A DNA stretch of 64,000 nt. Source: Mytilus californianus (lineage: Eukaryota). The stretch lies in NCBI RefSeq assembly GCF_021869535.1, contig NW_026262712.1:76198001-76262000 (forward strand), written 5' to 3'. Position 1 is the stretch's first letter, and each line of letters starts with the position of its first letter. The notes beneath the pieces were generated by a model. It saw nothing but the letters and a program-made list of their open reading frames with translations, was not told where the DNA came from and did no database searches. The translations under genes were made by a program, and so were the position numbers. Below are positions 14,240 through 45,100 of this stretch, one piece after another.

Positions 14240-14274
<35 letters not shown>

Positions 14275-14307: not shown

Positions 14308-14329
14308 GTACAAAGGAATGAATTCTCAC

Positions 14330-21464: not shown

Positions 21465-21518
21465 TTAACATCTCGTCATCTCAGCTGTCATCTGTATACC
21501 ATTCTCAAGTTCCATAGT
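21465..21518 (-). CDS. FABP: FABP copy A exon 4
   Basis: ttcttatag|ACTATGGAACTT...AGATGTTAA; TMELENGIQMTAEMTRC*. Confidence 0.9.
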   Translation of the reverse strand, partial: TMELENGIQMTAEMTRC

Positions 21519-24500
21519 CTATAAGAAATAAACACTTGAATATAAAAATCAATTACGTGTATTTGTCAATGAATACCAAAAAATCATCATTCCCCTTAAG
21601 GATAATGACTACTTTCTTTATATATTCAAGAAATGATACTGGCACATTTTTAGTATAACGTTTTTGAGTTCACTAACATTTTCCAAGATTAAAGAGTTAA
21701 AAATAAGAAAAAGGCAGATCCCTTATTCTAATCAGATCTATGAATAGAATAATGGTTCACTCTTAATTCAATTCATTTTAAGAAAACTGTTTTAAAGATT
21801 ATTTTGCACATACATCAAGCCGTTAGTTTTCTCGTTTGAATTTTTTACATTTGTCATATTGGTGTCTTTAATAGCTTTCTATGCCGTATGGATTTTGCTC
21901 ATCATTGAAGGCCATATTATGACCTAATACTTGTTAACTTCTACATTTGGTCTCTGGCGGAGAGTTGTCTCATAGGCAATCATACCATATCGTCATATTT
22001 ACCTGGTTATATATAAAATACTTAATAAAACAGAGTGCAACACACCTTTAAGTGACAGAAATATTAACCTTGAATACACTGTATAATAAAAAATAATACT
22101 TACAGTAATCAGTTTATCTCCCTTTATTTCCCTCATAACTTTGACTGTTTTCCATCCCATCAGTTCACTTTGTTCTTTCATTGTCATTTTACTGTCCGAA
22201 TCAATGGTTATTGTAAACTAAACAATATAAACAATATAAACATTTTAAAAATTTTAGTTCTCAGTTTGTAAGGTTTATATGATCACTATTAAACAACGTA
22301 ACAGTTTGTTGGATGCTGACAAGTAGCTTTTGGTTTTGCTTCTCGTACAATTTACATATGCATGGATTTTGTTAACATATTTAAAGGTTAAAGTTTTGAT
22401 AGATTTTGCATGCGTCATGTGGATTTTTTAGAATTAAAAATAATACAAATATAATTTATTTAGCTATTTCATAAAATTTTGCTTATACTTAATTAAAAGA
22501 ATCTTAAAATACATATAGATTTGTATAGAGTGTAGGTAAACTTTGTTTTTCATCTTTAAATCGTTCGGAGTCTATAAAAGTCGGAAATGCATTTAAAAGA
22601 AACATTCAGATATCTGCCATCAACACCCAATTCTCCAAATAATAAAAACTAAATTAAATACGACATCTACTGACACGGTTGCTGACTCGAGACATGCACA
22701 CTGACAAGGTTACTGATTTGGGACATGCACATTGACAATCGAGACATGAACATTGACAAGGTTACTGATTTGGGACATGCACATTGACAAGGTTGCTAAC
22801 TTGGGACATGCACATTGACAAGGTTGCTAACTTGGGACATGCACATTGACAAGGTTGCTAACTTGGGACATGCACATTGACAAGGTTACTGATTTGGGAC
22901 ATGCATATTGACGAGGTTACTGATTTGGGACATGCACATTGACAAGGTTGCTAACTTGAGACATGCACATTGATAAGGTTGCTGACTTGGGACATGCACA
23001 TTGACAAGGTTACTGATTTGGGACAAGCACATTGACAAGGTTGCTGATTTGGGACATGCACATTGACAAGGTTGTTGACTTGGGACATGCACATGAAAAA
23101 AGTGGCAGAGTATATCAAGGTTAATTATTCAATGACAAAGCGTGTACTGTACAAACACACGCTAACACCCGTTTCCTTAAGATTATTTTTACTCAATGTA
23201 GAATATGTTTGACCATACAGGTAGTGCATTTCATAAAACAACATATAGGGGAACAAACACTAGAGTGTTGGACTACTGATACACAACCTTTTAATATAGA
23301 CCGTTATTCAATTTTAAAACTTCTAATATCTTTGATATAGAAGGGGATACTACACATCTTTGGAATATTTTTTTTTTTCACAGGTATACAATAGACAAGT
23401 CGCATTTAATAGGTATTTTGAATAACAAGAATATATTGTTCCAATTTATGCAACAGGTTTTAAAAATAAAACATTACCCACAATCTCACGACGACGATAC
23501 ATCCATATCATGAATTTATGAGTATAATTTACCTTAAGGCCTTTCCCAAAAGGTCCTGTAGTAGTTACTTCTTCACCAGACTTAAATTTATAACATTTGC
23601 TTGGTGTTACATCACTAGATGCATCACACATCCAATACTCTCCATCTTGTTTAAACTCCAGTGTACTCTTTGCATTTCTGAATTTCTCAATCAGGTCTTC
23701 AGAGACACCTACAATGATGATGTAAAATGGTTATAATGTCATAGAATCACTTTATACCTTATATAATATTTTTGTGATATAATTTAGTTTTCAGCACAAA
23801 ATAAGTTTAATTCATTTTCTTTATTTAAAGTCTATTTCGAAGCTGAAATTGTGGTTATTAGTATTTTTGATTTATATTCGTTCATTATTGTTGAAGAAAA
23901 TCATTTTAATATTCCCGATCAATTTAAAATAAGAAGTACATTTTAAGCAGATATTTATTTGTCTTTTAGTGTTTCTTTCATTATTTATTCAAATGAATCG
24001 TGAAAACTTCATAAAATTTCGTTTAACTTTTATTCAGTAAAGTTGGATTTAAATATATATGAGTTCTGCACGTAAAGAATTTCAGATCAAATTGATGTTT
24101 CTCTAAAAGTGTAAATAGATGTAAATATGTGTTTTAAAAAAGGTTCGTTTATTCTTCACAAATTTTCTGTACTCAAGGGTATTTTTAAACGCGTAATAGA
24201 ATTTTGTTTTACGCTCGCATGTGGAAATGATAATTTAACTTATCGCTTGTTCATACTTAATAAGAATTAAGGTCAGTTCCGCAAGGGTAAGATGTAAATT
24301 ATTTTAAGAAACGCTTTATGTGTAATTTCCATATGTGCAGGTTAATTTAAGAAGTACTTATTTATCGTAGACTAGTCTTGTCGTTTAGCCCTATATCATC
24401 ATAACGAGTCATGAATTTTTGATAAAAGCAAGCATGTGGTATGATTGCCACTGAGACAACTCTCCACATTGATTATTTTTGGGTTAATAGGTTTTATATA

Positions 24501-27500
24501 GTTTTAAGTTTTTACAAGCGCAACATTTGCTCTACCATGTTTCATGTTTATCATTCAAAAGATAAAAGAATTCAACATGTTTATACATGTTCATTGTTCT
24601 GATATAATGTATTCAATACTTTATGCTGTTCAGCACATGCTTTATGCTCTCATAGGTTCAAATACTAGGTCACGCATTAAGGTCAAACGTTTAAGGTTTA
24701 GTCCGCATCTTGCTCATATATTTGAATGCTAATTAAGCTTTTATTTATTAGAAATATCATAAGCATACGTGTTCGTCATTTAATATGCATATGTTCATGC
24801 ATTTACGTAAAGTTTGTTTAGTTCAATACTCAAAATATTAATTGATCATTTATGCTGGAAAATTATATGAATTATATGTTTCGTATTAGCGCCACACGTG
24901 TTTTTTTTTTTTATATTTCTTCCTATGTTTGCGTTTAACGCAAACCTTTTGCGTTATAACGCAAACCTTTGCGAAATAACGCAAACCTTTGCGATATAAC
25001 GCAAACCTTTGCGAAATAACGCAAACATTTGTTTTATTTTATTTCTTATTTAAGTTTCAAAGGAAGCAGTAAATGGAGGAGGCTGCATATATTAAAATTT
25101 ATCACCCTTTGTACTCATTGCAATGTAAAATGCTTGAGTGTTTAGCACACATCATGGGATAATGATGAGCCGGATAATACATGTATATATATTACAAAGA
25201 AAATTGAGTAAATTGAAGTTATACCGAAGAAAAGGTTGGTTAGATTCAAACAAGCTACCCTTTTTCCATAAATGTTTAAGATGAAGAGGTTATTTTATTA
25301 TAATTATGTTCTCTACATTCAAATTGCTACCCAAGCATCTTAATAAGCTACCTCACTAGATTGAAATTAAAATTCAATGACTTTTTTTAAAGAATCTTTA
25401 TCATATTCTGAGATTTCAACAAACGATTTCTTACATCAAAATTTAAAAAGAATGTTTTTTTCTGAATAATAAATTTTAAAGCAGAAAGATCATTTTGTCT
25501 ATTTGACTTATAGTTTCACAATTGTATGACATTATGTTTGCTCTTATCTAGTTTACCACTTTCCGTTATTCAAAATTTTCAAAATCTTGGCCTTTCAATT
25601 AAAATTTGCCTATACAATATCTATTTACTTGTTAAATTTATATAATCTTCTGATGCATAAACCATTTATTAATTTGTGTATAATTGCACTTCAAGTATTC
25701 CTTTATTTCTATGCATATTTATTATAATGATTTGGCCTTGTGTTCATGGTTCTTCTCTTAACTAAATCACAACCTAAATTTGATGATAGACGGATATGCA
25801 AATGCCGACATTTACAAAACACTGCTTTCAAATTATATAATAAACATAAAATGTAAATTTAATATTATATATAGTTTTTTATTATTAAATATTCAAAACT
25901 TAATGAATAATTAAAATCAGAATGTTTGCGTTATTTCGCAAAGGTTTGCGTTATAACGCAAAAGGTTTGCGTTACAACGCAAATGTTTGCGTTATAACCC
26001 AAACATAGGAAGAAATATAAATAAAAAAAAACGTGTGGCGCTAATACGCTTCCGTTTGTTTCTATTATTTCCCTTATATACTTTTATATTGTTATTAATT
26101 GTATATGACTTTCATAATTATGCGCTTTTGAAGAAAGAAGATCGTAAAAACCATTTCACTGTGTTTGTTATAACTGTTTCAGGCCCTTGCTCATCCCCCT
26201 TTGTCCGCAAGGTGGGCTTTAAATTTGGTTAAGTCCAATCATAGCAGTCAAACGACAGTTCATCTAACACTGCAAATCAACTCTGATAATAAGCCGACAA
26301 TAAACTCATTCCGGATCTACCGTGTCATTAAATAAATGTAAGCTGGAAAATATAAAGTTTTTCTGCGTCATTAGTATAAGTCTGAAAAGCACCTGTAACA
26401 GTTGTAACAATATTGTGAAAAGCAAAAAAAAAAAAGTGATTTCCGCTTCGATTCTTTAATAAAAATATTACTACTCTATCTAAACCGCAAACATCTTGAA
26501 TAATCAATTTTTGTGATGCCGACAGCCTAAAGTTTGAAAATGTAAGCTATCCAGTCCTATTGATATACATATAAAGATATGTGGTATGATTGCAAACTAT
26601 TTACTAAATACCTAATGACCAGGATATAAACAAATACAGATCACAGTAAGACCTTCAAAAATGCGCAAAACACATACCGTCTGGAAAACTCGAAAATAAA
26701 TTGTTCAATAAAACATAAGACTGTTTCATAATCCTTTTACATGTTTTAATATGAAACTCGTGATCATGATGTAGAACTTTTACTTCCAGAGCAATGATCA
26801 ATTATACATTTCGGATCTGCTTACCCTTCCGGAGCACCTCAGATCATCCCCGGTTTTTGGTGGGTTCGTGTTGCTTAGTCTTTAGTTTTCTATGTTGTGT
26901 TTTGTATGCTGTTTTTCATTTTTGCCATTACATTGTCGTTCTTTTTTCGACTTATGATTTTGATTATCCCTTGGTATCTTTCGCCTCTATTTTGAAAAAA
27001 TATATATATATAAATAACACATACTTACAGTAGGATAGAGAATGAAAACGGGGAATGTGTCAAAGAGACAACAACCCGACCAAAGGCCAAAAAAAATAGC
27101 CCAAAGCCACCAATGGGTCTTCAACGCAGCGAGAAAATCCAGCACCCGGAGGCGGGCTTCAGATGCCCCCTTAACAATAATGAATACTTGTTCAGCGAAA
27201 TGGACGCCACGCTAAACAGACATGTTTTTCATTTAAAATTGCGATTAGTCCAGAAACATGAGGTCAAAATGTTAATCATTTGAAATTTCTTGTTCACCAG
27301 ATTCATTTTTCTACAAGAAATCAGTTAACTTTGGTATGTACGGTAAAAAGGTCACGATGACAAAATAAAAGGATCGCCGTGAATACTAATATACTATGCA
27401 AGCAGTACAAATAATTTTGTATATGCTAAAATAAGAAGATATGGTATGATTGCCAATGAGACAACTCTCCAACAGAGACCAAATGACGTAGAAGTTAACA

Positions 27501-28823
27501 ACTATAGGTTACCGTGTGGCCTTCAACAATGAGCAAAACCCATACCGCATAGTACTATAAACGGACCCATGAAAGTTTCATCCTACCATTCGTTGCCTGA
27601 CGATGGACACACTTGTCATTAGCGTGGCATTCCGACACTGGACATATATGTCCTTAGCGCGGACAAACAAAGGGGTTAATTAAACAATGCTTTGGTTTTT
27701 TTTAAATCTTGATGTATACATGGGATCAACGAAAAAAAAGAGCGCCCGGTTGTACGCTGTTAATTTCAAATGACGTTATACATTCCGATTCAAATTAAAA
27801 CAGTCAACAATGTTTTGTGGAATTTTGATTTGAGATACGTAAAGCATTAAAATGCAATTATCTCCATTCAATCAAGACGTTGAAACATTTCTCTGATTGC
27901 AATTTTTCGTTATATTTATAACTGTTTGGCTGTTTGGTTCGTTAACTTTTCTTACCAGCCAAAATATAACAGAAAGGTTCACATTATAATCCGCGGCTGA
28001 TATTTGATGACATATTTGATGACATATTTGATGACATATTTGATGACATATTTGATGACATATTTGATGACATATTTGATGACAGCAATGTGCTATTATA
28101 TATACGTTTTTAATCTCAATTAAAGACTTTAATTGTATAATATCCAGTGTCCATTTGAAAAGTTTGAAATAAAATGTCGAAGATGGATTGATAATTCCGT
28201 ATTCAACAATCATGCGGAAGACACTACTATTCAATAAAAAAACCTTATAATATAAAGATAAAGAGATGTGGTATGAATACCAATGAGACAACTATCCATC
28301 AAAGTCAAAATGATGTGGATGTTAGCAACTATAGGTTAATGTACGGCCTTCAACAATGAGCATAACCCATACTGTATAGTTGTCTATAAAAGGCCACGAT
28401 ATGACACAATGTGATACAATTCAAACGAGAAAACCAACGGCCTGATTTATGAAACACAACAAAACGAAACATTAATGACAGAAAATAATCAACAACAACC
28501 ATTCAATTACATGCTCCTGACTTATGATAGATATAAGAAGATGTGGTATGAGTGCCAATGAGACAACTCTCCATCCAAGTCAAAATTTATAAAAGTAAAC
28601 CATTATAGGTCAAAGTACGGTCTTCAACACGGAGACTTGGACAGGCCCATAAATAGTACTTGTATAAGCCTATAAATTATACAATTGAATATAAATTGTT
28701 CTATATGCAAAGTCTACCAAATATATAAAACTAAATGACAGTCTTACCTGATGCTTTGGCAAATTCCTCATAATTTGTGTACGAATCTCCGTCTCCGGTC
28801 CATTTTCCTATGAACTGAGTCAT
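21465..28823 (-). CDS. FABP: FABP/iLBP-like gene, copy A, 139 aa: join(28823..28748,23708..23533,22217..22104,21518..21465)
   Basis: MTQFIGKWTGDGDSYTNYEEFAKASGVSEDLIEKFRNAKSTLEFKQDGEYWMCDASSDVTPSKCYKFKSGEEVTTTGPFGKGLKFTITIDSDSKMTMKEQSELMGWKTVKVMREIKGDKLITTMELENGIQMTAEMTRC*. All introns GT-AG; FABP-typical length and intron positions. Confidence 0.92.
22104..22217 (-). CDS. FABP: FABP copy A exon 3
   Basis: gtttag|TTTACAATA...ATTACT|gtaagt; overlaps listed ORF 21999..22187. Confidence 0.93.
22671..23094. repeat. 31-bp minisatellite (~14 units) in intron 2 of FABP A
   Basis: ttgggacatgcacattgacaaggttgctaac. Confidence 0.95.
23533..23708 (-). CDS. FABP: FABP copy A exon 2
   Basis: cattgtag|GTGTCTCT...CTTAAG|gtaaat; overlaps listed ORF 23446..23631. 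Confidence 0.93.
24882..26055. mobile_element. Foldback-type non-autonomous DNA element in intron 1 of FABP A
   Basis: Inverted arms ~24882-25030 and ~25922-26055 with 20-bp palindromic subrepeats (tttgcgttataacgcaaacc); right end ctaatacgcttccgt, left tip missing. Confidence 0.8.
27187..27560. repeat. Chimeric segment also present at 43007-43390
   Basis: cttgttcagcgaaatggacgccacgctaaacagacatg...gcaagcagtacaa...aaaataagaagat; high identity at offset 15820. Confidence 0.9.
28001..28084. repeat. Perfect 12-bp tandem repeat x7 in intron 1 of FABP A
   Basis: (tatttgatgaca)7. Confidence 0.95.
28748..28823 (-). CDS. FABP: FABP copy A exon 1
   Basis: ATGACTCAGTTCATAGGAAAATGG...GCATCAG|gtaaga. Confidence 0.93.
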
Positions 28824-28959
28824 AATTCGATCAAACGAAAAGGTAGGAGATTGCGATTTATAAATTAATGATATTAAAACCAGTATTCTCTTTGTTATAT
28901 GCACTGCAACCAATATGCTTGAAGCGAATAGAAATGTAACTCATTATTGAATGTAAATA

Positions 28960-28967
28960 TTTATATA
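28960..28967 (-). promoter_or_regulatory. Candidate TATA box (TATATAAA) of FABP A
   Basis: Consensus on the coding strand next to the conserved block; a second candidate TATAAA lies at 28857-28862. Confidence 0.35.
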
Positions 28968-29219
28968 GCTGATTGGATGTTATAATATTCCATAGTTATT
29001 GATCTTGTCTGCTACTTATATTATTTTCTTCCTTTTCTCTGTTATTAATTAACTTCTTTTTCTTTCAAAAGGTTGAATATTACATTTTAATTAAACAAAC
29101 ACATTATTATTGTCTTGTTACTTTCTTGAAGTTAATATTTTAATAGTGGTTTTTGCCTTAAGTATCTTAAAGTTTGATTTACGTGATTATCCCTTTGAAG
29201 AAGGTAAAAATGTTATAAG

Positions 29220-29221
<2 letters not shown>

Positions 29222-29265
<44 letters not shown>
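29222..29265. repeat. (TC)n microsatellite, ~22 units, ~400 bp upstream of FABP A
   Basis: Directly visible. Confidence 0.95.
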
Positions 29266-29268
<3 letters not shown>

Positions 29269-29520
29269 CTGTTCATATCCTCCTACTTACTTTCTTGTTG
29301 TAGATTTTTAGCTTAACTTCATGTTAAAACTGTGCATGGTAACAAAAGTTTTTTATTATTATTTATTGTTTCCAAGTTAGACGTTTCAAACAAAGTAAAA
29401 ACCGTCCCACGTTTAAACATCACAATTTACATACTTAATGAACGAATGAGATACCGACTTAATGTTGAATAAATGCAGGTCAAAAACAAGGTTGAATAAC
29501 GGAGTTATATTTGCAGCACC

Positions 29521-30938
29521 TTACGGAAGCGTATTAGGGCCATCCTTTTTCACTTTTTTTTTCAAATTGTCGACTTTAATCTTGGAATTATCAACTTTAA
29601 TCTTGGAATTTCCAACTTTAATCTTGGGATTATAAACTTTAATCTTGGAAAATTCCAACTTTAATCTTGGAAATTCCAACTTTAATCTTGGAATTATCAA
29701 CTTTAATCTTGGAAATTCCAACTTTAATCTTGGAATTATCAACTTTAATCTTGGAAATGACTGATATTTTACTTCTAGCCAATAGTTTATTGTGTTTCTA
29801 AATATATACTTAATCTACTTATAATTATTTTCGCGGCTAAAATTTTTTGTAAAATGTAAAAGAAAAAAAAGACGTGTATCTAAAGTCTTGTATAGCTCAA
29901 CGTAGCCTAATATCCATGAAACTTCTTATTAATGTGTATACGTGGTATGCCAAAAATATGGGTCATGTTTTTGCGAGATTTTATATTACGTCACTTTTTA
30001 ATGACATTCTATATTGATATGCATTGTTTTTTCATAACTTTATATAGATTTGGGGTATGTTCTACATATCTTATATAAATATGTTATTGGAAATCTTATT
30101 TATGGCTAATTGTGTTATTTGAATCAATCAGGGACTTTACATAAATATAAAGTCCCCGAATCTATGCATTTAAAAAATAAAATATTGTATATAAGTAAAG
30201 GTCATTCTTTGTATATTTATGTATAAATGTATGTACCAAATATAAGTGAATGTTATATAAAAATGGATACATTTTTTTAAGTCAAAATAAGCACACCCTT
30301 ACCAAAAAAAATCGAAGTTACCCTCTCCCCCACCCCCTTTTCCCTGTGTTAATGTCAAAATTTAAATATCCATTTGTAATTATGTATGCAGTACATGCAG
30401 TTATTATATCATATTGATGAATAGGCGGATGTGCATCGATATTTACAATCGCAATCACCAACAAAAAGTAAAGTAAAGCACATCAAACTGAAGTGCACTG
30501 TTTGGCCGAGGCGAGAGTCCAGCGAGCCAGAAGTCACGATGTTCTCAATTCAGAGTGTCACTAGGTTAATGAAAGTCAAAACAAATCAGTGTCGCACTAA
30601 TGAGGGTCGGAAGATTAAAGTTGGAATTTTCAAGTTTAATGTTGATAATTCCAAGATCAATGTTGATAATTCCAAGATTAAAGTTGGATTTTCCAAAATT
30701 AAAGTTGGAAATTCCAAAATTAAAGTTGGAATTTCCAAGATTAAAATTGATAATTTCAAGATTAAAGTTGATAATTCCAAGATTAAAGTTGATAATTCCA
30801 AGATTAAAGTTGATAATTCCAGATTAATGTTGATAAATCCAAGATTAAAGTTGATAATTCCAAGATTAAAGTTGATAATTCCAATATTAAAGTCGACAAT
30901 TTGAAAAAAAAAAGGATGGCCCTAATACGCTTCCGTAA
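29521..30938. mobile_element. Foldback-type non-autonomous DNA element ~700 bp upstream of FABP A
   Basis: Termini ttacggaagcgtattagggccatcc / ggatggccctaatacgcttccgtaa; arms contain ~9 and ~14 copies of the 21-mer aactttaatcttggaattatc. Confidence 0.88.
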
Positions 30939-32185
30939 TACCTAATGTGTTAGGGATTATCATATAATCTTGAGTTATAAATGGTTTATTTAGTTCTTAT
31001 GGTGGGTTAGTGGGTAAAAAACAATATGTTTTGTTTTTTCTAATGTCTCTACACGAAATTTTTATTCAGCAAAAACTAATTTGAAACTCTTAGTGAAGAA
31101 TGAGTGGCATTTGCCAATTTACTAACATTGGAAAAAAACACTGACATTTTCGAATATTTTATATTTGATGAAATACGTTTCCTCTTTCTACCACATAATT
31201 TCTATAGATTTCAGAAGGAATAAACAATAAAAGACTCCTACGTTGTATTCAGACATCTCTTAAATTGATGTGAGCCAGTGCATTATTTAAACGATCATAA
31301 CGATACGTCAAAGCTATTTTCGAGCCGATCAATAACTTCAATTAGTGAAAGATATATTTGAATATACGATGACGAATGACATTTTATAATATTCTGTTGT
31401 AACGTTATAGTATATGAATGATAATAGGACGACGTACTAAGTAATCCTAGTTCAACAGACAATTAACCCCGCTCAATTCGAACTGCTTTTAAAAGGATTT
31501 TTTAATAGTAAAGAAGCTTCAGAAACATAGATGATGTATACCAATTTTATTAACGATAAGTAGAAGTCTATGGTAGGAGATGCTTCCGCTATCAATGATA
31601 CTGAACTCCTTCCATTTCGCTTCCGATTATTACAAATGTCTTTTATCATGTTTGTCTTGTTTTCCCTCAATTTATGATGCTTAAACAGAAACTGAAAGTC
31701 GTTTATACCAAATTCATATTAAGAAATAGCATGTGTCTTATTTTTATCTATTTGTTACATTATAGGATCTAAGAATTCACCATTAAGTCTATTTCCTACC
31801 AACAGAAGCAATTGACAGTTGAATGCGCACGTGGAACACAAACAGGTACATGTTTGTTTAGTAACATCAACAAGAAAATAAAATATGTCCCTTTTCATTT
31901 TCTTATATTAATTTTCTCTTGGTGGATTGGTGGATTATTATTTTTTTAATTTGGAAAATCTATAATTATCTAGTAAATGAGATATTATTATTAGTAATAT
32001 TGATTTGATACAACAATGCTGAAGTATTGAAATGGTTTTATAGATCGGTGATATTTTCACGTTTCCATACGGATTTCTAGCTGTCAGTCGGCCTTATGTT
32101 CATTCTATTATGGAAAAGGCGGATCGTTTCATTACAATTCTTTTTGCAAAAAGAATGTAATATATCTTAAAAGTTTCAATCATTA

Positions 32186-32202
32186 GGGAGCTACCATTTG
32201 AT

Positions 32203-32243
<41 letters not shown>

Positions 32244-32455
32244 CTAGGATGAAATTTGAAAATAGGCAGCACAGGAGTTTTGAGTAAAGAAAAAAGGCAG
32301 GATGAGCAACTTGGCAAAAAAAAAGGCAGGATGACAAATTATGTAAAAAAAGTAAGGATCAACTAATAAAAAAAAAAAAAGCAGGGCCGAATAAAGTGAA
32401 AAATAAAAAGGCAGGACCGAGATTACAACTACATAAAATTCAAATGGTAGCTCCC
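32186..32455. mobile_element. MITE, PIF/Harbinger- or Zator-like
   Basis: Perfect 16-bp TIR gggagctaccatttga, TTA TSD on both sides, internal poly-G and aaaggcaggat repeats. Confidence 0.85.
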
Positions 32456-32801
32456 TTAGTCCTTTCATTCCTTCATTCTATCTCATTTCTTCACTGCTCT
32501 CTGGTTTAATTTCACTGCTCTCTGGTTTAATTTCACTGCATGGTACGTGGATAGGAGCAAATATTTTGCAACAGGTCTCCTACAAACCTTTCAGAGAGGG
32601 CAAGGGTTCTTAACGTACGACACATAAATGAAGCATCGAATTTAACACCGTTCAGACCGCTGTGTACTTATACATCCCGCACAGCAAACGTTAACAGAAT
32701 TCCAACTTTAGCATGCACATGTTTTTATCGACATGATTGTTGCAAGAAGTAAACAATCTCAATTCAAATAGTTATCAAAGGTACCAGGCTTATAATTTAA
32801 T

Positions 32802-32845
32802 ACGCCAGACGCACGTTTCGTCTACGTAAGACTCATCAGTGACGC
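32802..32845 (-). ncRNA. Minimal type I hammerhead ribozyme motif, repeat ~32757-32897
   Basis: GCGUCA-CUGAUGA-GUCU(uacgu)AGAC-GAAA-C(gugc)GUC-UGGCGU. Confidence 0.85.
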
Positions 32846-32938
32846 TCAGATCAAAATAGTTAGAAAGCCAAACAAGTACAAAGTTGAAGAGCATTGAACG
32901 AGTAATAGAATGGTAACACTGTTTTTTAGATTCATTTG

Positions 32939-32944
32939 TTTATT
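32939..32944 (-). terminator. Poly(A) signal AATAAA of FABP copy B
   Basis: About 185 nt after the stop; same position in the alignable 3' UTR of copy C. Confidence 0.65.
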
Positions 32945-33129
32945 CAATTACTACATATTTGATCGAAGTTTGCATTTCTTATCGTACAAATGCATAGATT
33001 ACGATGGTTATAAACAACTACATTGGAAATATAGTGACATTTAACAGGACTGAAATAAACATTTATCAGAGGAAAAGTCACAACTACAGACAACGAAGAT
33101 CAGATAAGCTCATAAACATAGCTATTATC

Positions 33130-33183
33130 TCAACATTTTGTCATCTCAGCTGTCATTTCAGTTCCATTGTCAAGAACCATTGT
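33130..33183 (-). CDS. FABP: FABP copy B exon 4
   Basis: tttttcag|ACAATGGTT...AAATGTTGA; TMVLDNGTEMTAEMTKC*. Confidence 0.9.
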   Translation of the reverse strand, partial: TMVLDNGTEMTAEMTKC

Positions 33184-36100
33184 CTGAAAAAGAAAAAAAA
33201 AGAATTATTATCTAAGTATTTATCTATTGTTAGTAATATCACGAAAAAACACAATTTAGCTTAATATATCAACACACAACTGTTAGAAAATTATAATGTT
33301 GGTACATGCATATTTTTTCTACATAAACTATTATTATAAAAATGTTATAGGTCGTGACAATAGACTGAATGCCTTTGAACAATGTTTGGCCACTGAATTT
33401 TTCTTGTTTTTATATAAATATTACACCTTTCACAGGAGCGTGTGAGATATCAACTTACCTTCGGCTGTTTTCTGCTCTTTAGTCGGGTTGTTGTCTCTTT
33501 GACACATTCCTCATTTCCTTTCTCAATTTTATTAATAGCTCAACCCCTCTAATGGTCATTATTTTATACTGTTGTTGGGTTGCTTTCTAATTGACGTTTA
33601 CGCCAGTGCCCACATTCATTTTTTTTACATTATATCATTTATTAAAAGTATAATATAAGATACTGTACATTGATTAAAAAGCTCAGTGGAAAAGTTATAA
33701 TTATAGTAAAAAATGTGTATTATTATTATTGCGGAAGTTTACAGATTCGTGCATTACTACTGAAATGATATCACATGATATAACTGAGCAATATGAAAAT
33801 AAGAAGATGTGGTATGATTGCCAATGAGACAACTCTCCACCAGAGATAAAATGAAGTAGAAGGTTAGCAAATATAGGTCACCGTACGGACTTCAACAATC
33901 AGCAAAACCCACACCGCATAGCAAGCGACAAAAGGCCCGAAATTACAAAATTAACGTAAAACAATTCAAACGAGAAAACTAGCGGCCTAATTTACGTACA
34001 AATCAATAAACAAAAACAAAAAATGGTATAGCAACACACGACTCCACTGAATTACAGGCTCCTGACTTGGGACAGGCACATACAGAACATGGTGAGGGTG
34101 TTAAACATGTTTTCGGGCGCCCAACCTGGGACAGTGGTACAACAACACCAGAATAAACTTCAAAATAATAAACGAAAATAAAGTATGAAAACCAGTAACG
34201 TTACAAACGACAACTACTCAATTACAGGCTCCTGATTTGGGACAAGCACATATATGATATGGCCAGGTTAAACATGTTATGGGTGCACCAACCCACCTCC
34301 TACTCTGAGATAGTGGTTTAACAGTACAACATAAGAACAAACTATATTAATCAGTTAAAAATGGCCTAACTGATCAGATCGATACAAAGGACAAAAACAA
34401 CTAACAAAAACACAACAGACACATAGTACAGATCTGATAGTACTCACAGTTACTGAAGGATAGTTCAAAAACAACTAATAAACAATCATGTATCTTAGTA
34501 TAACATATCAGTACATTTAGTGTAAAGACGTCATTAACCGTCAAAGAAAAACATGACCTTGTGCAATGCCAAAACATGGGTATCTCTTTAAAAGATTAAC
34601 ATTCCATGTTATTCGACCCTCCAAGTTGCTGTTGATTTTAAAAAAAATCAAACTTGACATGTTTTGTCCTTTTCCGTTACAGAGTGCGTTACGATATACC
34701 AAGTCCTAAATTAATCATTTGCTTCTTAAAGAAAATACATGTGCTGTACTTTCGATATAATTTTTTTTAAAGTTGGAATGCGTTTGATTTTGATAAGTAA
34801 GCTTCTAATCCTATAAAAGCTATCAAAAACGGAGTTTTAACAAATATCAGCACAGTAACTTCACTTTTGAGCCATTAAAACATGTATGTGATCTCGGGTT
34901 TCTGTTCAATTGACGTATGGCGTACATTTTATTTCATTCATCTGATTTTATAGATGACGTAACAAAATAATGGTTTCGGTACCTCAAAGAATAAATTTAT
35001 ACTTAAGATATTGTAAATTTAGCTAAGATTCCCTTATTTCTTTTTAGATTATCTTGCTGTCAAATAAAATCATGTATATACATCGAAGATTTTCCTGTCT
35101 TTGTTTTATAGTAAAACGTGCAATATTTTAAAGTCAAGTTCGAACATATGCCTCATTTGTGTGCTCATAGATACTATGACGACAGTGGCGACCCACCGTC
35201 TTTGATTTGAAATGTTAATAAAAAAAAACTTATTTACGCAGTTCAGTAGAAAGTCCACAATTGATATCTATAAAGCTATGTTTTACATAACTCATGTTTT
35301 TTAGGATGTAGAAAAAGTACTATGAATTCCATTTTATAATTCAACGAAGTGATTCTCATAGTTACTTATGCATTGATGCTGAAAGGGAGCAAGATATCCA
35401 TACCTTATTTAAAAAAGAAGTAAAAAAGTTTTTTTAAGTCATCTGTTTTCCGAATATTATATTCAAACACTTTGTTTCTTCAGTGACTTACATTTACTAG
35501 AACACACCCGCGAAATCGCTGGCATTAAGAGCGTGGTTGAAAGTAAGTAAACTGTTGTAGGATGATTTTTTGTAAAAGATTTTATGACTGGAGAATTTCA
35601 GGAAAGGTATCAAAATTATCTTAAACATGAACTGATGTCAATATAACATTTTGAATTTTTCACCAGTTCAAAATATTGGATGTAAATCTAAAGAATGTCA
35701 ACGCAAAGGTCAACTATTTGTAGTAACATGAACGCACAATTTTTAGGGGGCGAGTTGCCTTGTAACCATGCTTTTTGTTTCGTTGTGCAGAAGACAGAAT
35801 AAGCGATATGTGAACCTTTTCAATTTCATTCACTCGAAACGGATTCCACTAATGAAATCAGATTATTATGTGATATTTACAAATACGATTGGAATTTTGA
35901 ATAGAGCAATAATAAGATACTCAATAAACAATGCGATTTGTGCACAAAACTTTCATATTTTTACTGAAATCTGGAAATGGCGTCAGACTTAATAAGGTGT
36001 TGACTTTTAATAAAGCAAATTAATTATAATATGGGGAGCTTATTACGTCATATGAATAGAGCCATAATAAAATACTCAATAAACCACAACCACTGTAAAT

Positions 36101-39100
36101 CGACGACGTCACAATGCGATTTGTGCAAAAAAACGCCATATTTTACTGAAATGGCGTCAGAGTTTTCAGTGGGAAACTTTATGCTCGGGATAAAATTCCA
36201 ATATAACGACCCAGGCCATGTGAAAATTTTCAACAAACCTATGGCTTGCATGAATTATTTCTTAAACATGATTATATACCGGTTCCAGGGGTCCCATGAA
36301 ATCGGATTTTTATCGCTTCCAAGGACCGAAGGAATGTTTGATACCGGTTCTTTTAGCTCAGGTACCCAAAACATTGTATTTAATCAAGATAGGAATTAAG
36401 GGTTGTTTGTAAATTTACCAAAATTCTGTGTAATTTTAAATAGTCCTAAAAGGAAGTCTTGTCTTTGATTAATAGTCCGTCCGATGACGGAAATAATATC
36501 CGATTGCCTTTATTTTGGTTTTCCTCCCAAAATAACCCAAACGGAATGATCATAAGCGAAGATGACAAATGCGACTATGCATGGTACCTATAGGACACAG
36601 AGGCATGATGGTTAATTTATTGTGGAAGGAAGTGGGGTCTTCTCATTTAATAGTATAGATACTGCTTTGTTTTACATTGTTTTATCGTATGGCATTATTT
36701 TCTCAAATATGTAATACTGGAATATACTTACAGTCATCATTTTATCTCCCTTTATTTCCCTCACAACTGTGACTGTTTTCCATCCCATCAGTTCACTTTG
36801 TTCTTTCATTGTCATTTTACTGTCAGAATCAATGGTTACTGTAAACTAATAGAAAAGATAAAATTTATAAATAAGAAGAACATTTGTCAATCTTAAATGC
36901 GCATTTGATGCAAACAAACTTGAATATATCAAAATAGTCATTGTCGTAATATTTTTTTTTTGTTCACACAACAGTCATGGTCGATTACATTTTTTGTTTA
37001 TATATACAACAGTCAAGGTTAAATATGTTGTTTGTTTAATTTATTAAAATTAGTTGTGTTCTGCTTGAGTAAGGTTAAATCTGATCAACTTGACAACTTT
37101 TACAATAAAACAGTTTTTGATCTATTCTAGAAATGTATTAAGTAAATTTAGATTTATTGCAATAGCAAATCCATTGTCTCATTCTATCGTCTCGTTTTTG
37201 AATCATTAATGTATGTTTTGTTACTGCCCCTGATTGAAAAAAAATATACAATATTCGTACATTGCATTAAAAATTTAAGAATGTATTTGAACGAGCGTTA
37301 GAAAAAGAAGAATAGGGAAACTAGTCGAGATTTTCTCCTGTTTCCGCAGAGATTAGACATATTTTTTCAAATTCTCCTACAATGTATGCAACTTGCTTAA
37401 TCCTGCATTTCGAAACTTACATTTGCATTTTTTTACCTTCCAATCGTTGAATTTGATTGTTCATCAAATCGACATGATTTAAACGCGGACATCGAAGAGG
37501 AACCGAAAGTAAACTGTGTTATTAATATTAATTTAAATAATTATAATTGTTCACTGATAACGTATATCACTTTGGTTTATTTGTACACCTGCATTTGTAG
37601 AGTGAAATGGTCGATTACAGGATACTATTTCATTTTTGTAAACACAACAGTCATTGTCGTATACATGGACATTGTTTGTTGTAAACACAACAGTCATTGT
37701 CGTATACATGGACGTTGTTTTTTGTAATCAGAACAGTCATTGTATACATGGGCATTGTTTGTTGTAAACACAACAGTCATTGTATACATGGACTTTGTTT
37801 GATGAACAAACAATAGTCATTGTCGGATATATGGACGTTGTTTGTTGTACACACAACAGGCTTCGTATACATATAGACAATGTTTGGTGTACACACAACA
37901 GTCATTGTCGTATACATGAACATTTTTTGTTGTACACGCAACAGTCATTGACGTATACATGGACATTGTTGTACACACAACTGTCGTTGTCGAATACATT
38001 GGCGTTTTATGTTGTACTCACAACAATCATTGTCGTATACATTGACATTTTTTGTTGAACACACAATAGATAACGTCGAAAGTATAGTTCATTTGTTCTA
38101 TATTTTAAAAACAAAAGCCTAGCTAAAAAGAAAGCCAATTTCAGTGTTATAATGCCGAATCAAAATTTTAACAAAGCGAAATACACGAACAGCACAATTA
38201 TTAAAATTCCCATAATATTGAGTAATCTATTCAAGCGGCAAAGCACTAGATCGACTATATTTGTATAGCTATATGTGTATCTTTATACCTTTAGGCCTTT
38301 TCCCATAGGACCGGTCGTGACAACTTCCTCTGAAGGTTTAAATTTATAACATTTGCTTGGTATAACATCACTACTTGTATCGCAAATCCAATATTCTCCA
38401 TCTCGCTTGAATTCAACAGTATTCTTTGCATTTCTAAACTTTTCGATCAGTTCATCAGGAATACCTAAAATTGTATTAAACACACATTAAGACTAATATA
38501 ATTCTTTAAACAGACTTGAATGGCATATGTTTATTTTATATCAATTAAACAACCAATCGTTTGGGATGTTCTAATTATTAAAAAAAAAAAAACTTTTGAG
38601 ACAGTTGTAAAAATCCCTAATTATAGAAATATTAATGGGTGTAATCTTAAAGGAAGACGAAAGCATTTAGGAAATCAACACAACTTGTTTTAAACCAGGC
38701 ATTGAATTTCTCTTTTAAGAACTAATACATTTCTTAAAATGATTTTATCAAATGAAAAAAGGTACATTAAAACGCATAAGTTGAAAATAAACTGGCATCA
38801 CCATGGCCAAAAACGAATAAGACCAAAAGACAAACAACAGTACAAAAAAAACAACATAGAAAACTAAAGACTGAGCAACACGAAACCCACTAAAATCTTG
38901 GGCGATCTCAGGTGCTCCGGGAGGGTAAGCAGTTCTAGGTCAACATGTGGCACCCGTCGTGTTGCTTGTGTAAGTACAAACCCGGTTATAAGTCTATTAC
39001 GGTAGGTCACATTCGGGGGAAAAAAGACGGGATTGTGGTTACAAAAATTGGAATATATCCGTCATTATCTGCGAAACAGATATTCCATAACGGTCAACCA

Positions 39101-40036
39101 ACTCTTGATGGCGTCCTTTAAATTTATGAAGGGATGATTTCAACTTCACCACTTGGAACTCTTGGTTTGATAGCTTCCTTGTGAGCAGCAACCCTCTATC
39201 ATGGAAATCTTGATAGGAAATGCAAGCCCTAGAATATCGTATCAAAAGAGATATATACACCGTATGCGTTTGCTGTTTGAATGATGCCATATAAAAATGG
39301 AAAGTTCACAATAGGGAAGCTGAAATTGTCTCATTTGTCGTAAAGTTTTGTTTTTAACCGACCTTAATCATGTTCATTGTCAATTCCTAGATGTATGTCA
39401 AGATATGAGGCAGAAAATGTTCTTTCAAATCCTTCGAATGATTTATAAAGCTCGAATCATTGTATAGAAAGACAAGTTTCCCGTAATTCTACGGGTACAC
39501 ATTCCAATGTGATTTACAATAAATAGATTTTTGATATTAAAACTTAATTGTTTTCATAATTTTTACATATACCTTGAAGTGATTATTTTTCGGAAAATAT
39601 GTAACACAATTATATACTGGATATGATCGATATTACTTAAATGTTACATCCATGTTGATACATCAAACAGAAAAAAGACCTGACTATAGGCAAATACAGA
39701 GTGCTACTGCAACGAAGCAAACAATTACAAATAGACTTTCATTGATTGACATTTGTATACAAATATAAGACAACGTGTTGTTGTTTTAATATAGTTTCAG
39801 TCAAATTGTGATTTGTACCAAATTTGCAACGCTTGTTAAGCAGTTTTTGATATTTGTTAGATTATGTTATGAATGATATGCTATATTTATTTTTATTTTT
39901 GAATGTGCATTGAAAATTCAAATTATTTATTTTTCTGTTAATGTTATAAAAGTAACTTGCCCGATTCCTTAGCGAACTGGTCATAATTTGTGTATGTGCT
40001 ACAGTCATCTTTCCATTTCCCAATGAATTGAGCCAT
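33130..40036 (-). CDS. FABP: FABP/iLBP-like gene, copy B, 139 aa: join(40036..39961,38464..38289,36845..36732,33183..33130); intron 1 is GC-AG
   Basis: MAQFIGKWKDDCSTYTNYDQFAKESGIPDELIEKFRNAKNTVEFKRDGEYWICDTSSDVIPSKCYKFKPSEEVVTTGPMGKGLKFTVTIDSDSKMTMKEQSELMGWKTVTVVREIKGDKMMTTMVLDNGTEMTAEMTKC*. No stops or frameshifts. Confidence 0.88.
33804..34575. mobile_element. Family A interspersed repeat, near full length, in intron 3 of FABP B (other copies ~291-408 plus 680-960, 3131-3320, 5490-5950, 21815-21995 reversed, 27430-27570, 28260-28650, 43248-44350, 56820-57275)
   Basis: aataagaagatgtggtatgattgccaatgagacaactctccac...ctcctgacttgggacaggcacat seen repeatedly within the window. Confidence 0.85.
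35497..36660. mobile_element. Probable Helentron-like non-autonomous element in intron 3 of FABP B
   Basis: Starts actagaacacacccgcgaaatcgc, ends taatagtatagat; absent from the homologous intron of C. Class from recalled bivalve repeat ends. Confidence 0.4.
36732..36845 (-). CDS. FABP: FABP copy B exon 3
   Basis: ctattag|TTTACAGTA...ATGACT|gtaagt. Confidence 0.92.
37638..38060. repeat. ~43-bp degenerate minisatellite (~10 units) in intron 2 of FABP B
   Basis: gtaaacacaacagtcattgtcgtatacatggacattgtttgtt. Confidence 0.9.
38289..38464 (-). CDS. FABP: FABP copy B exon 2
   Basis: ttttag|GTATTCCT...CTAAAG|gtataa; overlaps listed ORF 38283..38483. Confidence 0.92.
38775..39413 (-). mobile_element. 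Penelope-like element 3' fragment (family B) in intron 1 of FABP B
   Basis: Listed ORF 39039..39290 (LIRYSRACISYQDFHDRGLLLTRKL...DRYGISVSQ); colinear with 59421-60080. Confidence 0.8.
39961..40036 (-). CDS. FABP: FABP copy B exon 1 (GC donor)
   Basis: ATGGCTCAATTCATTGGGAAATGG...GAATCGG|gcaagt; same 76-nt length as paralogs. Confidence 0.88.
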
Positions 40037-41224
40037 CTTTAAATTTAAAAAAATAAACGTGTTATTAAATCAAACTCCAAAAATCGAATGTATCTCTGTT
40101 CAAATAAAGTTCAAGCTTTTCTCTAATACAACGCTTACAGTTTAAACAAATAATGTAACCAAACAATGAAACATCGTCCAAATTATTGACAAAATTTTAA
40201 CAAAGCTCTAATTTTTCACATTTTAGTATGATCAATAGTTTTGTGTTTTTCATGTTGAACTTTTCTGACTAATCGGAAAAAAGAGCAGATGTCTACAAAA
40301 TTGAATCATCGTCACGTTTATTGACACGAGCTTGTATTGAGCATTTGAAAGATTTAGTTTGCAATTGACCATATTTGATTTTTTACTTCTTCTATGTTTA
40401 GTCTTTCAACTGGCATGTGGTGTTATATATCTGACTAATAACACAGCTAAAGAAGTTGACAAATATGTCAATAATTCCCAATTATTTTTTTACGATCAAC
40501 CTAAAAGTTCATGTTGAAAAATTTATAATACAACAGGGTGAAAAATATAAATTTAAAAAAGTAAGCTTAAACATGTGTGTCTTTTTAATATGTAAAAATA
40601 ATTTTAACACGACCTTCAAAACAGTTCATTTTAAGACTTTGGCTGTGTTTTTCAGAGAGAACATTTTTACAGTTGAAATGTTTGTCTCAAAGTTACCCAA
40701 GATGTACGTGTGTAGTGTTCACTAAAGTATTTATCATTTAATTGATAAACGGTTTTCTCATTCTCTCTTCTTTTACTTTCTGAAAATGAATGAATATCGA
40801 TAATTTTAATGGGTACGTATTTCTTTGTTTCTCCTTTTCAATGAACGTTGTTCAAATATTAGTATTTTATCATCCATATGTTACTCGTATGTATAACAAT
40901 AGATTAATTTACTTGAAACTTTACTGAAAAAAACTAGTCTGTTTTTAAATACATTAATGTAATTTATCAACGTTACTATTAAATCGGAAAGAAGGAAAAC
41001 GTTGGTGTTTTTTTACCTCAACATAGCAACTTTAACAAATATTTTCCTTATGTTTTTTTCTGTACGAAAAATAATAAGCAGACGTGGTAATTGCCAATGA
41101 TTATTTAACTGTTCATTATACACTTTAATATGTCAAAGATACGAACAATTACAGTTGTATGTCTGTTTGAATATCAAATTCAATGTTATCTCGTTTGCGA
41201 TATGCTTCGTTATTGTCATGATTC

Positions 41225-41810
41225 AAATTATAGGGGGACAATAATAACTCATAAAACTCATAAGTCGAAGAAAAACAAACACAGTCGTGGCCAAAAAGGA
41301 AATGACGAAAAAATAAAAAGCTGTCTGCAATATTACACAGAAAATTTAAAACTTAGCAACACGAACCTTAAAAAAATCCGGGAGTGGTTTCATGTGTCTA
41401 GGAGGGATAAGCATGTCTCATTACAATTACAGATTCGGTGATAAGTCTCATTCATAGTCATACTCGAGACAAAAACAGGATTGAGGATACGATAATTGAA
41501 ACATGTCCGTAGTTATATGTTACACTGATATTCCATTAGGGTCAAGCTAATAATTATGACGTCTGTTAAATTTTCGAAGGAATTACTTCAGGTTTACCTA
41601 TGAAACCCTTGCTTTAATAGCTTCCTAGTAGTAGCAACCCTATATCATGGAAATTATGAAAGCTAAAGCAAGATCTAGAATTTCGTATTAAATGGAAGAT
41701 ACATATTCGATATGCAGGTGGTTTAGTAGTGTTGCTATAAAGAAGTTGGAAATTTAAAATCGGAAAGCTGAAATCGTTTCTTTTTTCGTAAGGTTAAGTT
41801 TTCAAAGGCA
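41225..41810 (-). mobile_element. Old, degenerate family B PLE fragment upstream of FABP B
   Basis: Colinear with family B; a counterpart lies at the homologous position upstream of C (50565-50940). Confidence 0.6.
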
Positions 41811-43719
41811 GCCAACGTTGCAATTCCATAAGGCAATGTTTTCTTTAGACTTAGATTTTGGCTGTTCTATTTGATTCTAAAACTCTCGAATGTTTTAAAA
41901 AAAAATAATTATGCTTTACAAACTTTTCTGGTGCATACCTGATTAAGGTTATTCCCAAAACACATGTAATGTACGCCTGGTAACCATATAAAACGTGTTT
42001 TAAACAGGTCAATGGGAATTCTCATTTATTTCACATTGCCAATCATTGAATTAGAAATATCAATTCGAATAAAATCTTTCTGTGAGGGTGGTAATTAATA
42101 AATCATGATTACTATAGTTTTTATTTTGCATTTAAGTAGGAAATAAGCATCATATGAAGTTCCTTCCTCACGCAATTGTTTCTAAAATAACTTTTCATCA
42201 GGTATGCACGAGATTATAATTATTGAGAGCTAACAATATAAAACTTTTGACAGCATAAAAACTATAACAAAGTGAACAAACTTACTTATAATATGTTGCC
42301 ATATACAAGATCATGCTTTTTTCAGATTGTTTATGAAATATTTAATCTAAATCCGGTGGATGTATACTGGTTGACTTTTTTGTCTGGGAAAACATAGTTT
42401 ATTTATTAGTTTAAAAAGAGGCGAGAATTACCAGGGGGACATTCAAAACTCAGGTCGAAGAGAAACTGACAACGCAATGGCAAAATACGAAAAAAGACAA
42501 AAAGACAAACAAAACCCCAAAACACTAAATAAAAAACTAAAAGCTAATAACAACCCCACCAAAAACCGAGGGGGCCTTAAGCCTAAATTGTGTTTGAACT
42601 AGCTTTTAGTTACAATGAATACTGTACGATCGTTACCTTTGGTTTTATTTTGTCTTTTTGCTAGGTTTTATATGATTTGTGCACAATGGATAGGTCAAGC
42701 GCTATAAAACTGATTTGTTTTCAGTTGTTTTAATGTTGTGCCTTTTTATCTTTCTGTCATATTTGTTTTCGTTGAATGGTTTTTAGTATAAACAAGGCCT
42801 TTGCAATTCATATTCTCGTATAAATTGGTTCACATTTTATCACGCCGGGCATTTTATAGCTTATCATACGGCATGTGATTTGTTCATGGCTGAATGTCTT
42901 ATGATGACTTATAGTTGTTTACATCCTCATCCTTTGATTTTTAGTGGATATTTTTATTTGCAATCATACCACATTTCCTTACATATATATAAATAAATAA
43001 TTTATCCTTGTTCAGCGAAATGGACGCCACGCTAAACAGACATGTTTTTCATTTAAAATTGCGATTAGTCGAACAAAATGAGGTAAGAATGTTAATCTTT
43101 TGAATTTTCTTGTTCACCAGATTCAATTTTCTACAAGAAATCAGTTAACCTTGGTATGTAGGGTAAAAAGGTCAAGATGACAAAATAAAAGGATCGCCGT
43201 AAATACTAATATACTATGCAAGCAGTACAACTAATTTTGTATATGCAAAAATAAGAAGATGTGGTATGATTGCCAATGAGACGACTCTCCACAAGACACC
43301 AAATGACACAGAAATAAACAACTATAGGTCATCGTACGGCCTTTAACAATGAGCAAAACCCATACCGCATATTCAGCTATAAAAGGCTCAGAAATGACAA
43401 ATGTAAAATAATTCAAACGAGAAAACTAACGGTCTAATTTATGAACAAAATAATGAACGCAAAACAAATATGATACACAGAAACAAACGACAACTACTAA
43501 ATTACAGGCTCCTGACTTGGGACAGGCACATACAGAATATGGCGGGGTTAAACATGTTAGCGGGCGCCCAACCCTCCACCTAACTTGGGACAGTGGTGTA
43601 ACAGTACAACAAAAGAACTAACCATCAGTCGAAAAAGGCTTCACTCATCAGATGGATACAAATAGAAATACATCTAACAAAAACACAGAGTGGACATGGA
43701 CGGGTACTTATACATTCTA

Positions 43720-44210
43720 TATAAGGGTACTTATATATTCCATTGTGGTGTACTTGTGTACTGTCGTAAATTAATGGGAGGTGTCCTTTGTTATTCTGTG
43801 GTTTACATGTTGTTATATACTATTACATTATTTATTTATGTATTTCTCTCTCCTGAGTATTCTTGCGTTTATTTGTACTGTATTCCTGTCACGTAATGTT
43901 GTCATTTTAGCGGTATTTTTAACATTATTTGCCATATAAGCGGGATGTTTGGCTAGCCATAAACCAGGTTCAACCCACCTGTTTTTTTTAAAATGTCTTG
44001 TACCAAGTCAGGAATATGGCAGTTGTTATCAAATAGTCCGTTTCTGTGTATATTGGCGTTTGTTTTTGTAGCAGTTCAGTGTTTCTGTTGTTCTGTTGTT
44101 TTTCTCTTATAGTTGACGTGTTTCCCTCGGTTTTAGGTTGTGACCCGGATTTGTTTTCGCTTAATCGATTAATGACTAATCAACAGCAGTATCCTACTGT
44201 TGCCTTTATT
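43720..44210 (+). mobile_element. Family C repeat inserted in opposite orientation into a family A copy
   Basis: Family A stops at ~43710 and resumes at ~44211 (tacacatcccgacaac). Confidence 0.65.
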
Positions 44211-44853
44211 TACACATCCCGACAACAAAAAGAAAGTGACTTTAAGTACAGATCTGAGAGTACTCGCAGTTACTGACAGCTAGTTCAAAGCCAATAACAA
44301 CTGATAACATAAATCATACATCTAAGACTAAAATATCAATCAGTACACATATGTATATTTAGAACAGCCAAAACCATTAAAGATAAACAAAAAACAAAAC
44401 ACAAAACACAAAAACAGTAAATCAGGTAATTGTAACAACTTTAGACTAATTAACAAATTATCATTGTCAACAAAATTAAGAAAAAAAAGAAGATACAAGT
44501 AAGATAAAAAAAAAATAGAAAATAATAGTAAGATAATCCACCAGCAATGGTACCGACACAGTGGGTATGACAAACGAATAATGTGATTAACCGTAGGCCG
44601 ATGTATTTCTTGAATATTCAAAATGACGTTCTTTTTTCGATTTGGAAGCAAAGCCATGTTTTGATTCCAATAGAACATTGGCTGAACGTGATTGACGTCA
44701 GAATTGCAATTGCAACGTCAGTTGTATTTTCAACAATGCCGGATATGAAAATGGACATTAGTATTGGTGTTGATCGCTTAGATATTAAACAAAATCATTC
44801 TAAAAGTAAGCTAACATGTATAAAAAAATTACATAAGCTATTTGAGTTCATTT

Positions 44854-44859
44854 TTTATT
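44854..44859 (-). terminator. Poly(A) signal AATAAA of FABP copy C
   Basis: About 190 nt after the stop; homologous to the signal in copy B. Confidence 0.65.
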
Positions 44860-45046
44860 CATTTACTATCTATCTTATTGATGTTTGCATATCATACAGT
44901 ACAAATGCATAGATTACAATATTGTAAGCGACTATATATTGGTAATATAGAGACATTTAACTAGATTGAAGAACACAGTCATCACAGGAACAGTCACGTC
45001 TATAATTATACGAAGATCAGAGATATGCATAGACATTGATGTTATG

Positions 45047-45100
45047 TCAACATCTTGTCATCTCAGCTGTCATTTCAGTTCCACTGTCAAGAATCATTGT
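45047..45100 (-). CDS. FABP: FABP copy C exon 4
   Basis: ttttgcag|ACAATGATT...AGATGTTGA; TMILDSGTEMTAEMTRC*. Confidence 0.9.
   Translation of the reverse strand, partial: TMILDSGTEMTAEMTRC

Follow-up and report, generated by a model that had tools for sequence, protein, structure and literature searches.

The window analysed here, a 64,000-nucleotide stretch of the genome of the mussel Mytilus californianus (contig C132:76198001-76262000; G+C 32%, zero N), carries part of a tandem array of genes for intracellular lipid-binding proteins (iLBPs) of FABP (fatty-acid-binding protein) type. The proteins of four working genes, A to D, belong to a branch of the iLBP/FABP superfamily that is mollusc-specific and has diverged strongly; they lack the Arg-x-Tyr pair of FABP3/4 and keep an arginine at the place of FABP4 Arg106. 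A first-pass annotation, made from the DNA letters alone, had taken the missing pair as a hint of a ligand other than a fatty acid. The main outcome of our analysis is that this over-reading is corrected: on sequence grounds, a non-fatty-acid ligand is possible but is not indicated, and the most economical cargo would be fatty acids or related acidic lipids, to which we give a probability of about 0.5.

The last strand lacks Arg126 and Tyr128 but the position of Arg106 keeps its arginine

In the binding mode of FABP3/4-type proteins, the ligand carboxylate is held by the Arg126-Tyr128 pair, while Arg106 contacts it through water. The register of the mussel proteins relative to these residues was determined with MAFFT, with an HMMER profile compared with the FABP4 chains of the PDB, and with hhalign against seven canonical invertebrate FABPs. 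All three methods agreed with the hand alignment of the first-pass annotation, and so reproduced its replacement of Arg126 by Ala (Leu in a fifth copy, E) and of Tyr128 by Met or Phe. The two positions are occupied by Ala and Met in A, B and C, and by Ser and Phe in D. In protein A, the residues equivalent to FABP4 Arg106, Arg126, Tyr128 and Arg130 are Arg113, Ala134, Met136 and Arg138, and the codons of interest are as follows.

46623..46625, minus strand: Arg113 codon of A, equivalent of FABP4 and I-FABP Arg106 (MAFFT, HMMER profile and hhalign)
45059..45067, minus strand: Ala134-Glu135-Met136 codons of A, in the last strand, at the place of Arg126-x-Tyr128

The last-strand peptides quoted in the first-pass annotation are all present on the minus strand, each followed by a stop codon: MTAEMTRC at 45050-45073 (A) and 21468-21491 (C), MTAEMTKC at 33133-33156 (B) and MTLEFKRG at 6862-6885 (E). 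The peptides of A, B and C terminate real last exons, whereas E is a pseudogene and lies outside 21465-45100, the piece to which the annotation referred. The motif VREIKGD, which was said to be kept in A to D, occurs in this exact form only in A (46608-46628) and B (36744-36764); C reads MREIKGD and D reads TREVKGD. The arginine itself is present in all four, as Arg113 in A, B and C and as its counterpart in D.

The penultimate Arg or Lys of these proteins, which the annotation had named as a residue that might instead occupy the 126/128 positions in the cavity, aligns with Arg130 in the sequence registers. Position 130 is basic in 40 of the 41 members of our family alignment, those that bear Arg126 included. 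Thus, the penultimate residue is not a displaced clamp residue.

The carboxylate is held differently in other fatty-acid-binding proteins

The step from a missing Arg-x-Tyr pair to a non-fatty-acid ligand proved to be a weak one. In FABP2, the carboxylate of oleate is held by Arg106 (107 in the numbering of the paper), Trp82 and Gln115, and not by residues 126 and 128, and FABP1 uses Ser39, Arg122 and Ser124 for this purpose (10.1101/2024.07.25.605175). The Arg-x-Tyr clamp is canonical only for the FABP3/4 types and the CRABPs. Liver, ileal and intestinal FABPs likewise do not have the pair. Since FABP1 and FABP2 anchor the carboxylate otherwise, proteins outside subfamily IV normally do without the pair, and its absence tells little about the class of ligand. 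Arg126 and Tyr128 occur together in only seven sequences of the 41-sequence alignment, all of them FABP3/4-like, whereas Arg106 occurs in 35.

Gene models

Gene models were built by comparing the window with itself and by inspecting splice sites. The loci, all on the minus strand, are as follows.

Gene A, 45047..49180: exons 49180-49105, 48347-48172, 46709-46596 and 45100-45047; 139 aa, identical to P0003 (LOC127704827)
Gene B, 33130..40036: exons 40036-39961, 38464-38289, 36845-36732 and 33183-33130; 139 aa, identical to P0002 ('gastrotropin-like')
Gene C, 21465..28823: exons 28823-28748, 23708-23533, 22217-22104 and 21518-21465; 139 aa, identical to P0001 ('gastrotropin-like')
Gene D, 1169..4832 within the window: exons 1-3 at 4832-4757, 1759-1584 and 1282-1169; 138 aa, identical to P0013
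Gene D, exon 4: L002:9171-9121, 830 bp beyond the window start; last strand MTSEFKRG
Pseudogene E, 6862..14404: exon 1 at ~14404-14328, exon 2 remnant at 12361-12181, exon 4 remnant at ~6915-6862

Each of the genes A, B and C is divided into four exons, of 76, 176, 114 and 54 nt, with intron phases 1/0/0 and a reading frame of 420 nt. Their last exons have an AG acceptor and complete the four-exon frame. The introns are bordered by GT..AG with one exception, a GC donor in intron 1 of B; this donor lies at 39953-39960 on the minus strand (G|GCAAGT), and its junction is the one used by the annotated P0002. The protein models of A, B, C and D are letter-for-letter identical to the four database proteins listed above, and these are intact working genes. 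In E, exon 1 is short by one base, and what is left of exon 2 is frameshifted, contains an in-frame TAG and lacks a GT donor. A tblastn search with D found no exon 3 in E, only a doubtful 20-residue match at 7339-7280. The exon 4 remnant can be read as MTLEFKRG followed by a stop, but E is a pseudogene and its last strand is no evidence on a working protein.

Expression and purifying selection

The RNA data comprised one stranded RNA-seq run and three assembled-contig runs recorded as 'RNA?', a type that is a guess. RNA joints in A at 45100/46596, 46709/48172 and 48345(+2)/49103(+2) correspond to all three modelled introns, a single contig of 722 nt runs through the four exons, and the stranded reads agree with a minus-strand RNA. 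Eight reads continue from exon 3 with 30 nt identical to 38291-38320, at the end of exon 2 of B; because these reads join exons 3 and 2 of B, this gene is spliced and expressed. The ratio of nonsynonymous to synonymous substitution rates (dN/dS) was 0.26 between A and B, 0.15 between A and C and 0.15 between B and C, which indicates purifying selection on all three genes.

Two further observations concern the RNA data on A. At position 48287, in exon 2, all four runs have C on the plus strand, compared with T in the assembly. Read on the coding strand, codon 46 thereby becomes CGT (Arg) instead of CAT (His). Arg is also found there in the M. galloprovincialis relative P0005, and the difference probably represents an allele carried by the reference individual. 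Within intron 2 of A, the stretch 47272-47555 reaches a summed depth of up to ~2000 in the contig runs, whereas the depth of the exons is 25-80. Loose ends are numerous in this stretch, and similar copies lie at 59422-59653, at 38758-38966 and in other parts of the window; it is probably an abundant transcribed interspersed repeat.

The proteins are diverged members of the FABP superfamily

The proteins of A, B and C pass just one Pfam model, PF14651 (Lipocalin_7), with 35.9 bits for P0001, 31.4 for P0002 and 26.0 for P0003 relative to a curated gathering cut-off of 25.4 bits; the match spans positions 3-89 of the 128 profile positions. The full proteins had no match to PF00061 at E <= 1, and a six-frame search of the genome with PF00061 missed the genes of the window, which are too diverged for this model. 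When single exons were compared with Pfam, exon 2 of C and D gave weak PF14651 matches and exon 3 gave none, and a PDB search using exon 3 alone returned zero matches. The best sequence match in the PDB was liver FABP 1lfo (E 4.5e-5), followed by other FABP1 chains including human L-FABP, by gastrotropin and by liver-basic FABP (Lb-FABP), at ~25% identity.

An AlphaFold2 model based on the 41-sequence alignment was confident, as judged by the predicted local distance difference test (pLDDT 96.6) and the predicted template-modelling score (pTM 0.87). It comprises 10 strands and 2 helices, that is, a FABP barrel, in which the last strand of A is formed by residues 131-138. Foldseek returned at least 310 FABP-type matches at E <= 0.001, with query-normalised template-modelling (TM) scores of 0.76-0.87; they include Sm14, Blo t 13, squid ReP1-NCXSQ, I-FABP, L-FABP and FABP3/4/7. 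The model thus predicts the fold of the superfamily, a ten-strand barrel with a helix-turn-helix lid in a protein of ~130-140 aa, and the small proteins, which are without a signal peptide, are cytosolic. The four-exon structure and the phases 1/0/0 are also those of the superfamily, with RNA joints that match exactly, and the intron positions and phases of A to C are those conserved in vertebrate FABP genes. Methionine makes up 6.5-7.2% of the residues in A to D, as opposed to 2.9-5.3% in canonical relatives.

The structure prediction and the alignment of homologues had both been proposed in the first-pass annotation. The distinct clade that it had suggested was borne out, as a mollusc-specific branch, and Arg126 and Tyr128 are absent also from relatives in other Mytilus species, in oyster and in Aplysia. 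Arg106, by contrast, is retained by nearly all members of the array and these relatives.

Two observations concern the cysteines. An Arg-Cys or Lys-Cys pair ends the proteins P0003, P0002, P0001, P0005, P0012, P0016 and P0043, from Mytilus to Aplysia (P0014 has R-C-T), and is not found in the canonical FABPs of the alignment. A Cys53-Cys64 disulfide was considered and dropped, since the pair is inconsistent across relatives (P0011 has Cys53 only).

The genes belong to an array of about 17 copies

Approximately 17 copies of exons 2 and 3 were found on the same contig between 75.87 and 76.58 Mb (loci L001 and L003-L018), a span of ~0.7 Mb, all on the minus strand. The array in Mytilus is a head-to-tail series of about 17 genes on one chromosome. 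None of the last exons recovered, from 12 loci outside the window and from A to E, has Arg126 or Tyr128. Position 126 is Ala, Ser, Leu (in E), Gln, Met, Cys, Thr or Tyr, and position 128 is Met, Phe or Leu. The equivalent of Arg106 is arginine in all recovered exon 3 sequences of the array but two, which have lysine. Exon 4 of the copies at 76.42 and 76.58 Mb was not found by a regular-expression scan, and these copies are outside the last-strand tally. At least one further copy of the array carries an in-frame stop, in exon 3 at ~76108861 (GW*NVK).

An exhaustive search of 1.84 billion representative proteins with a profile hidden Markov model gave 78 proteins at E <= 0.001 and 17 at E <= 1e-10. 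Close matches that carry a species name came from M. galloprovincialis, M. edulis, M. trossulus and M. californianus, and farther ones from Crassostrea virginica and Aplysia californica. A word-based search with the full protein found close Mytilus relatives only, and the neighbours in the ESM Atlas are molluscan FABP-like clusters. The Aplysia protein P0043 ends in MTAYFVRC, which implies that the signature is older than Mytilus. The same genome also has a canonical FABP3/4-type gene, on the minus strand of locus L019 (G000:C154:23903001-23913000; exon 2 at L019:9473-9285), with L-I-S-R-E in exon 3 and E-V-T-C-T-R-K-Y in the last exon. The genes of the array are already in NCBI under the automatic names 'gastrotropin-like', 'liver-like', 'Fh15-like' and 'type 2-like'. 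A search of the full-text literature on Mytilus and bivalve FABPs, on gastrotropin and on FABP with okadaic acid found no description of the array, of the clade or of such an expansion.

Cavity pattern and proposed function

For eight diverged members of the clade, we compared 21 positions homologous to FABP4 cavity residues with the remainder of the protein. The cavity-homologous positions were more variable (1.73 vs 1.32 bits, permutation P = 0.006). Arg113 was the most conserved of the 21 (seven Arg and one Lys among the eight sequences), and position 134 was among the most variable.

We propose that A to D are cytosolic lipid chaperones in which a single fixed arginine anchor would be combined with diversified hydrophobic cavity walls. 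Arg113 alone may hold the acidic or polar head of an amphiphilic lipid, as in intestinal FABP, and the methionine-rich walls, which differ between paralogs, would set the preference for the hydrophobic part of the ligand. That the arginine is retained and conserved is as good an argument for an acidic or polar head group as against it. If the paralogs do differ in ligand preference, they would provide a natural series for the retuning of an iLBP cavity around a fixed anchor residue, and could bear on the handling of lipids and xenobiotics in a filter feeder of ecological and commercial importance.

Several points weigh against this proposal. Both the ligand and the role of Arg113 are read from sequence comparison, the inward orientation of Arg113, Ala134 and Met136 comes from homology and strand alternation, and the cavity positions were transferred from FABP4 by homology rather than taken from a measured cavity. 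The residues that assist the arginine in FABP2, Trp82 and Gln115, seem to correspond to Val87 and to Ala or Thr at 122, according to a hand alignment with a rat I-FABP sequence. Arg106 is also present in FABP3/4, where it contacts the carboxylate through water only, and its conservation could serve an internal network of water and charge. In addition, a conserved Glu99, homologous to FABP4 Gln95, might neutralise Arg113.

Alternative explanations

A possible but rather doubtful explanation is that the clade abandoned carboxylate lipids in favour of other hydrophobic molecules, for instance sterols, retinoid or carotenoid products, heme-like compounds, xenobiotics or algal toxins, with the loss of Arg126 and Tyr128 as its signature. 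All recovered members have small or hydrophobic residues at 126 and 128, the sites homologous to the cavity are hypervariable between paralogs, the proteins are rich in methionine, and the nearest solved relatives in sequence, FABP1, FABP6 and Lb-FABP, are promiscuous or bile-acid-binding types; the canonical FABP of the genome could cover the traffic of fatty acids. In contrast, Arg113 is retained as the best-conserved site of the cavity set, and the iLBPs known to bind non-acids replace the equivalent of Arg106 (Gln108 in CRBP). Absence of Arg126 and Tyr128 is also common in fatty-acid-binding iLBPs, given that FABP2 does not use these residues and FABP1 uses Arg122 and Ser124. As a lead only, the genes most strongly induced in a scallop after feeding on a toxic diatom included FABP genes, though of another type (PMC6410316).

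It is improbable that the proteins have no small-molecule cargo and that the FABP fold is used for stress protection, as in the SAHS proteins of tardigrades, or for interactions with proteins or membranes. SAHS proteins are among the structural matches (TM 0.84-0.85), the tandem expansion is large and lineage-specific, and the C-terminal Cys is conserved from Mytilus to Aplysia. However, ligand-bound FABPs match equally well or better in Foldseek, the predicted lid and the cavity arginine are conserved, and a signal peptide is absent, unlike in the secreted SAHS proteins.

A more specific idea, and a long shot, is that the array is an adaptive radiation in which the arginine and fast-evolving, Met-lined cavities sequester dietary lipophilic acids beyond ordinary fatty acids, for instance polyether carboxylic phycotoxins (okadaic acid, azaspiracids) or other algal metabolites. 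If this were true, the array would contribute to the tolerance of mussels to such compounds and to their retention in tissue.

Finally, the missing clamp is hardly credible as an alignment artefact, in which a register shift would put the penultimate Arg/Lys or another residue at 126/128: although single-sequence phmmer alignments to the PDB end at residue ~126-131, short of the last strand, and this strand carries an additional loop residue compared with FABP4, a shift is rejected by the agreement of MAFFT, HMMER and hhalign with the hand alignment, by the pairing of the penultimate residue with the generally basic position 130, and by the absence of Tyr anywhere in the last strand.

Other features of the window

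No Rfam family reaches its gathering score in the window. Two minus-strand stretches, at 32802-32845 and 8860-8903, match RF00163 (Hammerhead_1) over the full model with 30.6 and 32.5 bits (E 8e-6 and 1e-6, for searches of short stretches), relative to a gathering score of 34 bits. Upstream of gene A, at 53855-55718, lies a satellite-like tandem array of ~66 copies of a 28-bp unit (TACCAAACAACACTTGATAGATATTTGA) with 77-88% matches.

Comparison with known lipid-binding proteins

Liver FABP (FABP1), gastrotropin or ileal BABP (FABP6) and liver-basic FABP (FABP10), which belong to PF14651, resemble the mussel proteins in fold, size, four-exon structure and the absence of an Arg-x-Tyr pair. However, identity is only ~25%, and the phmmer alignments stop short of the last strand. 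The Ser39-Arg122-Ser124 site of FABP1 is not found in the mussel proteins, where the equivalents of Arg122 and Ser124 are Ala134 and Met136; we take FABP1 Arg122 to correspond to FABP4 Arg126. In addition, FABP1 has Thr102, presumably its equivalent of Arg106, where the mussel proteins keep Arg113.

CRBP1 and CRBP2 share with the mussel proteins the iLBP fold and the lack of an arginine at 126. The CRBPs carry Gln108 and Gln128 in place of both arginines. The mussel proteins differ from this pattern of Gln at both sites, since their position 113 is Arg.

FABP3, FABP4, FABP5, FABP7, FABP8, FABP9 and the CRABPs are alike in fold (TM 0.82-0.85), and the equivalents of their Arg106 and Arg130 are kept in the mussel proteins. 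In contrast, Arg126 and Tyr128 are found in no recovered member of the array.

The FABP2 structures 1icn, 1dc9 and 3akn match the mussel model with TM scores of 0.81-0.82, although FABP2 chains gave no significant match in the single-protein sequence search of the PDB. FABP2 still has Arg126, which the mussel proteins do not. The motif V-R-E-I-x-G-D/N around the FABP2 arginine resembles the mussel motif. In FABP2, this deep Arg106 is the direct anchor of the carboxylate without residues 126 and 128, and the mussel proteins keep an arginine at the same place.

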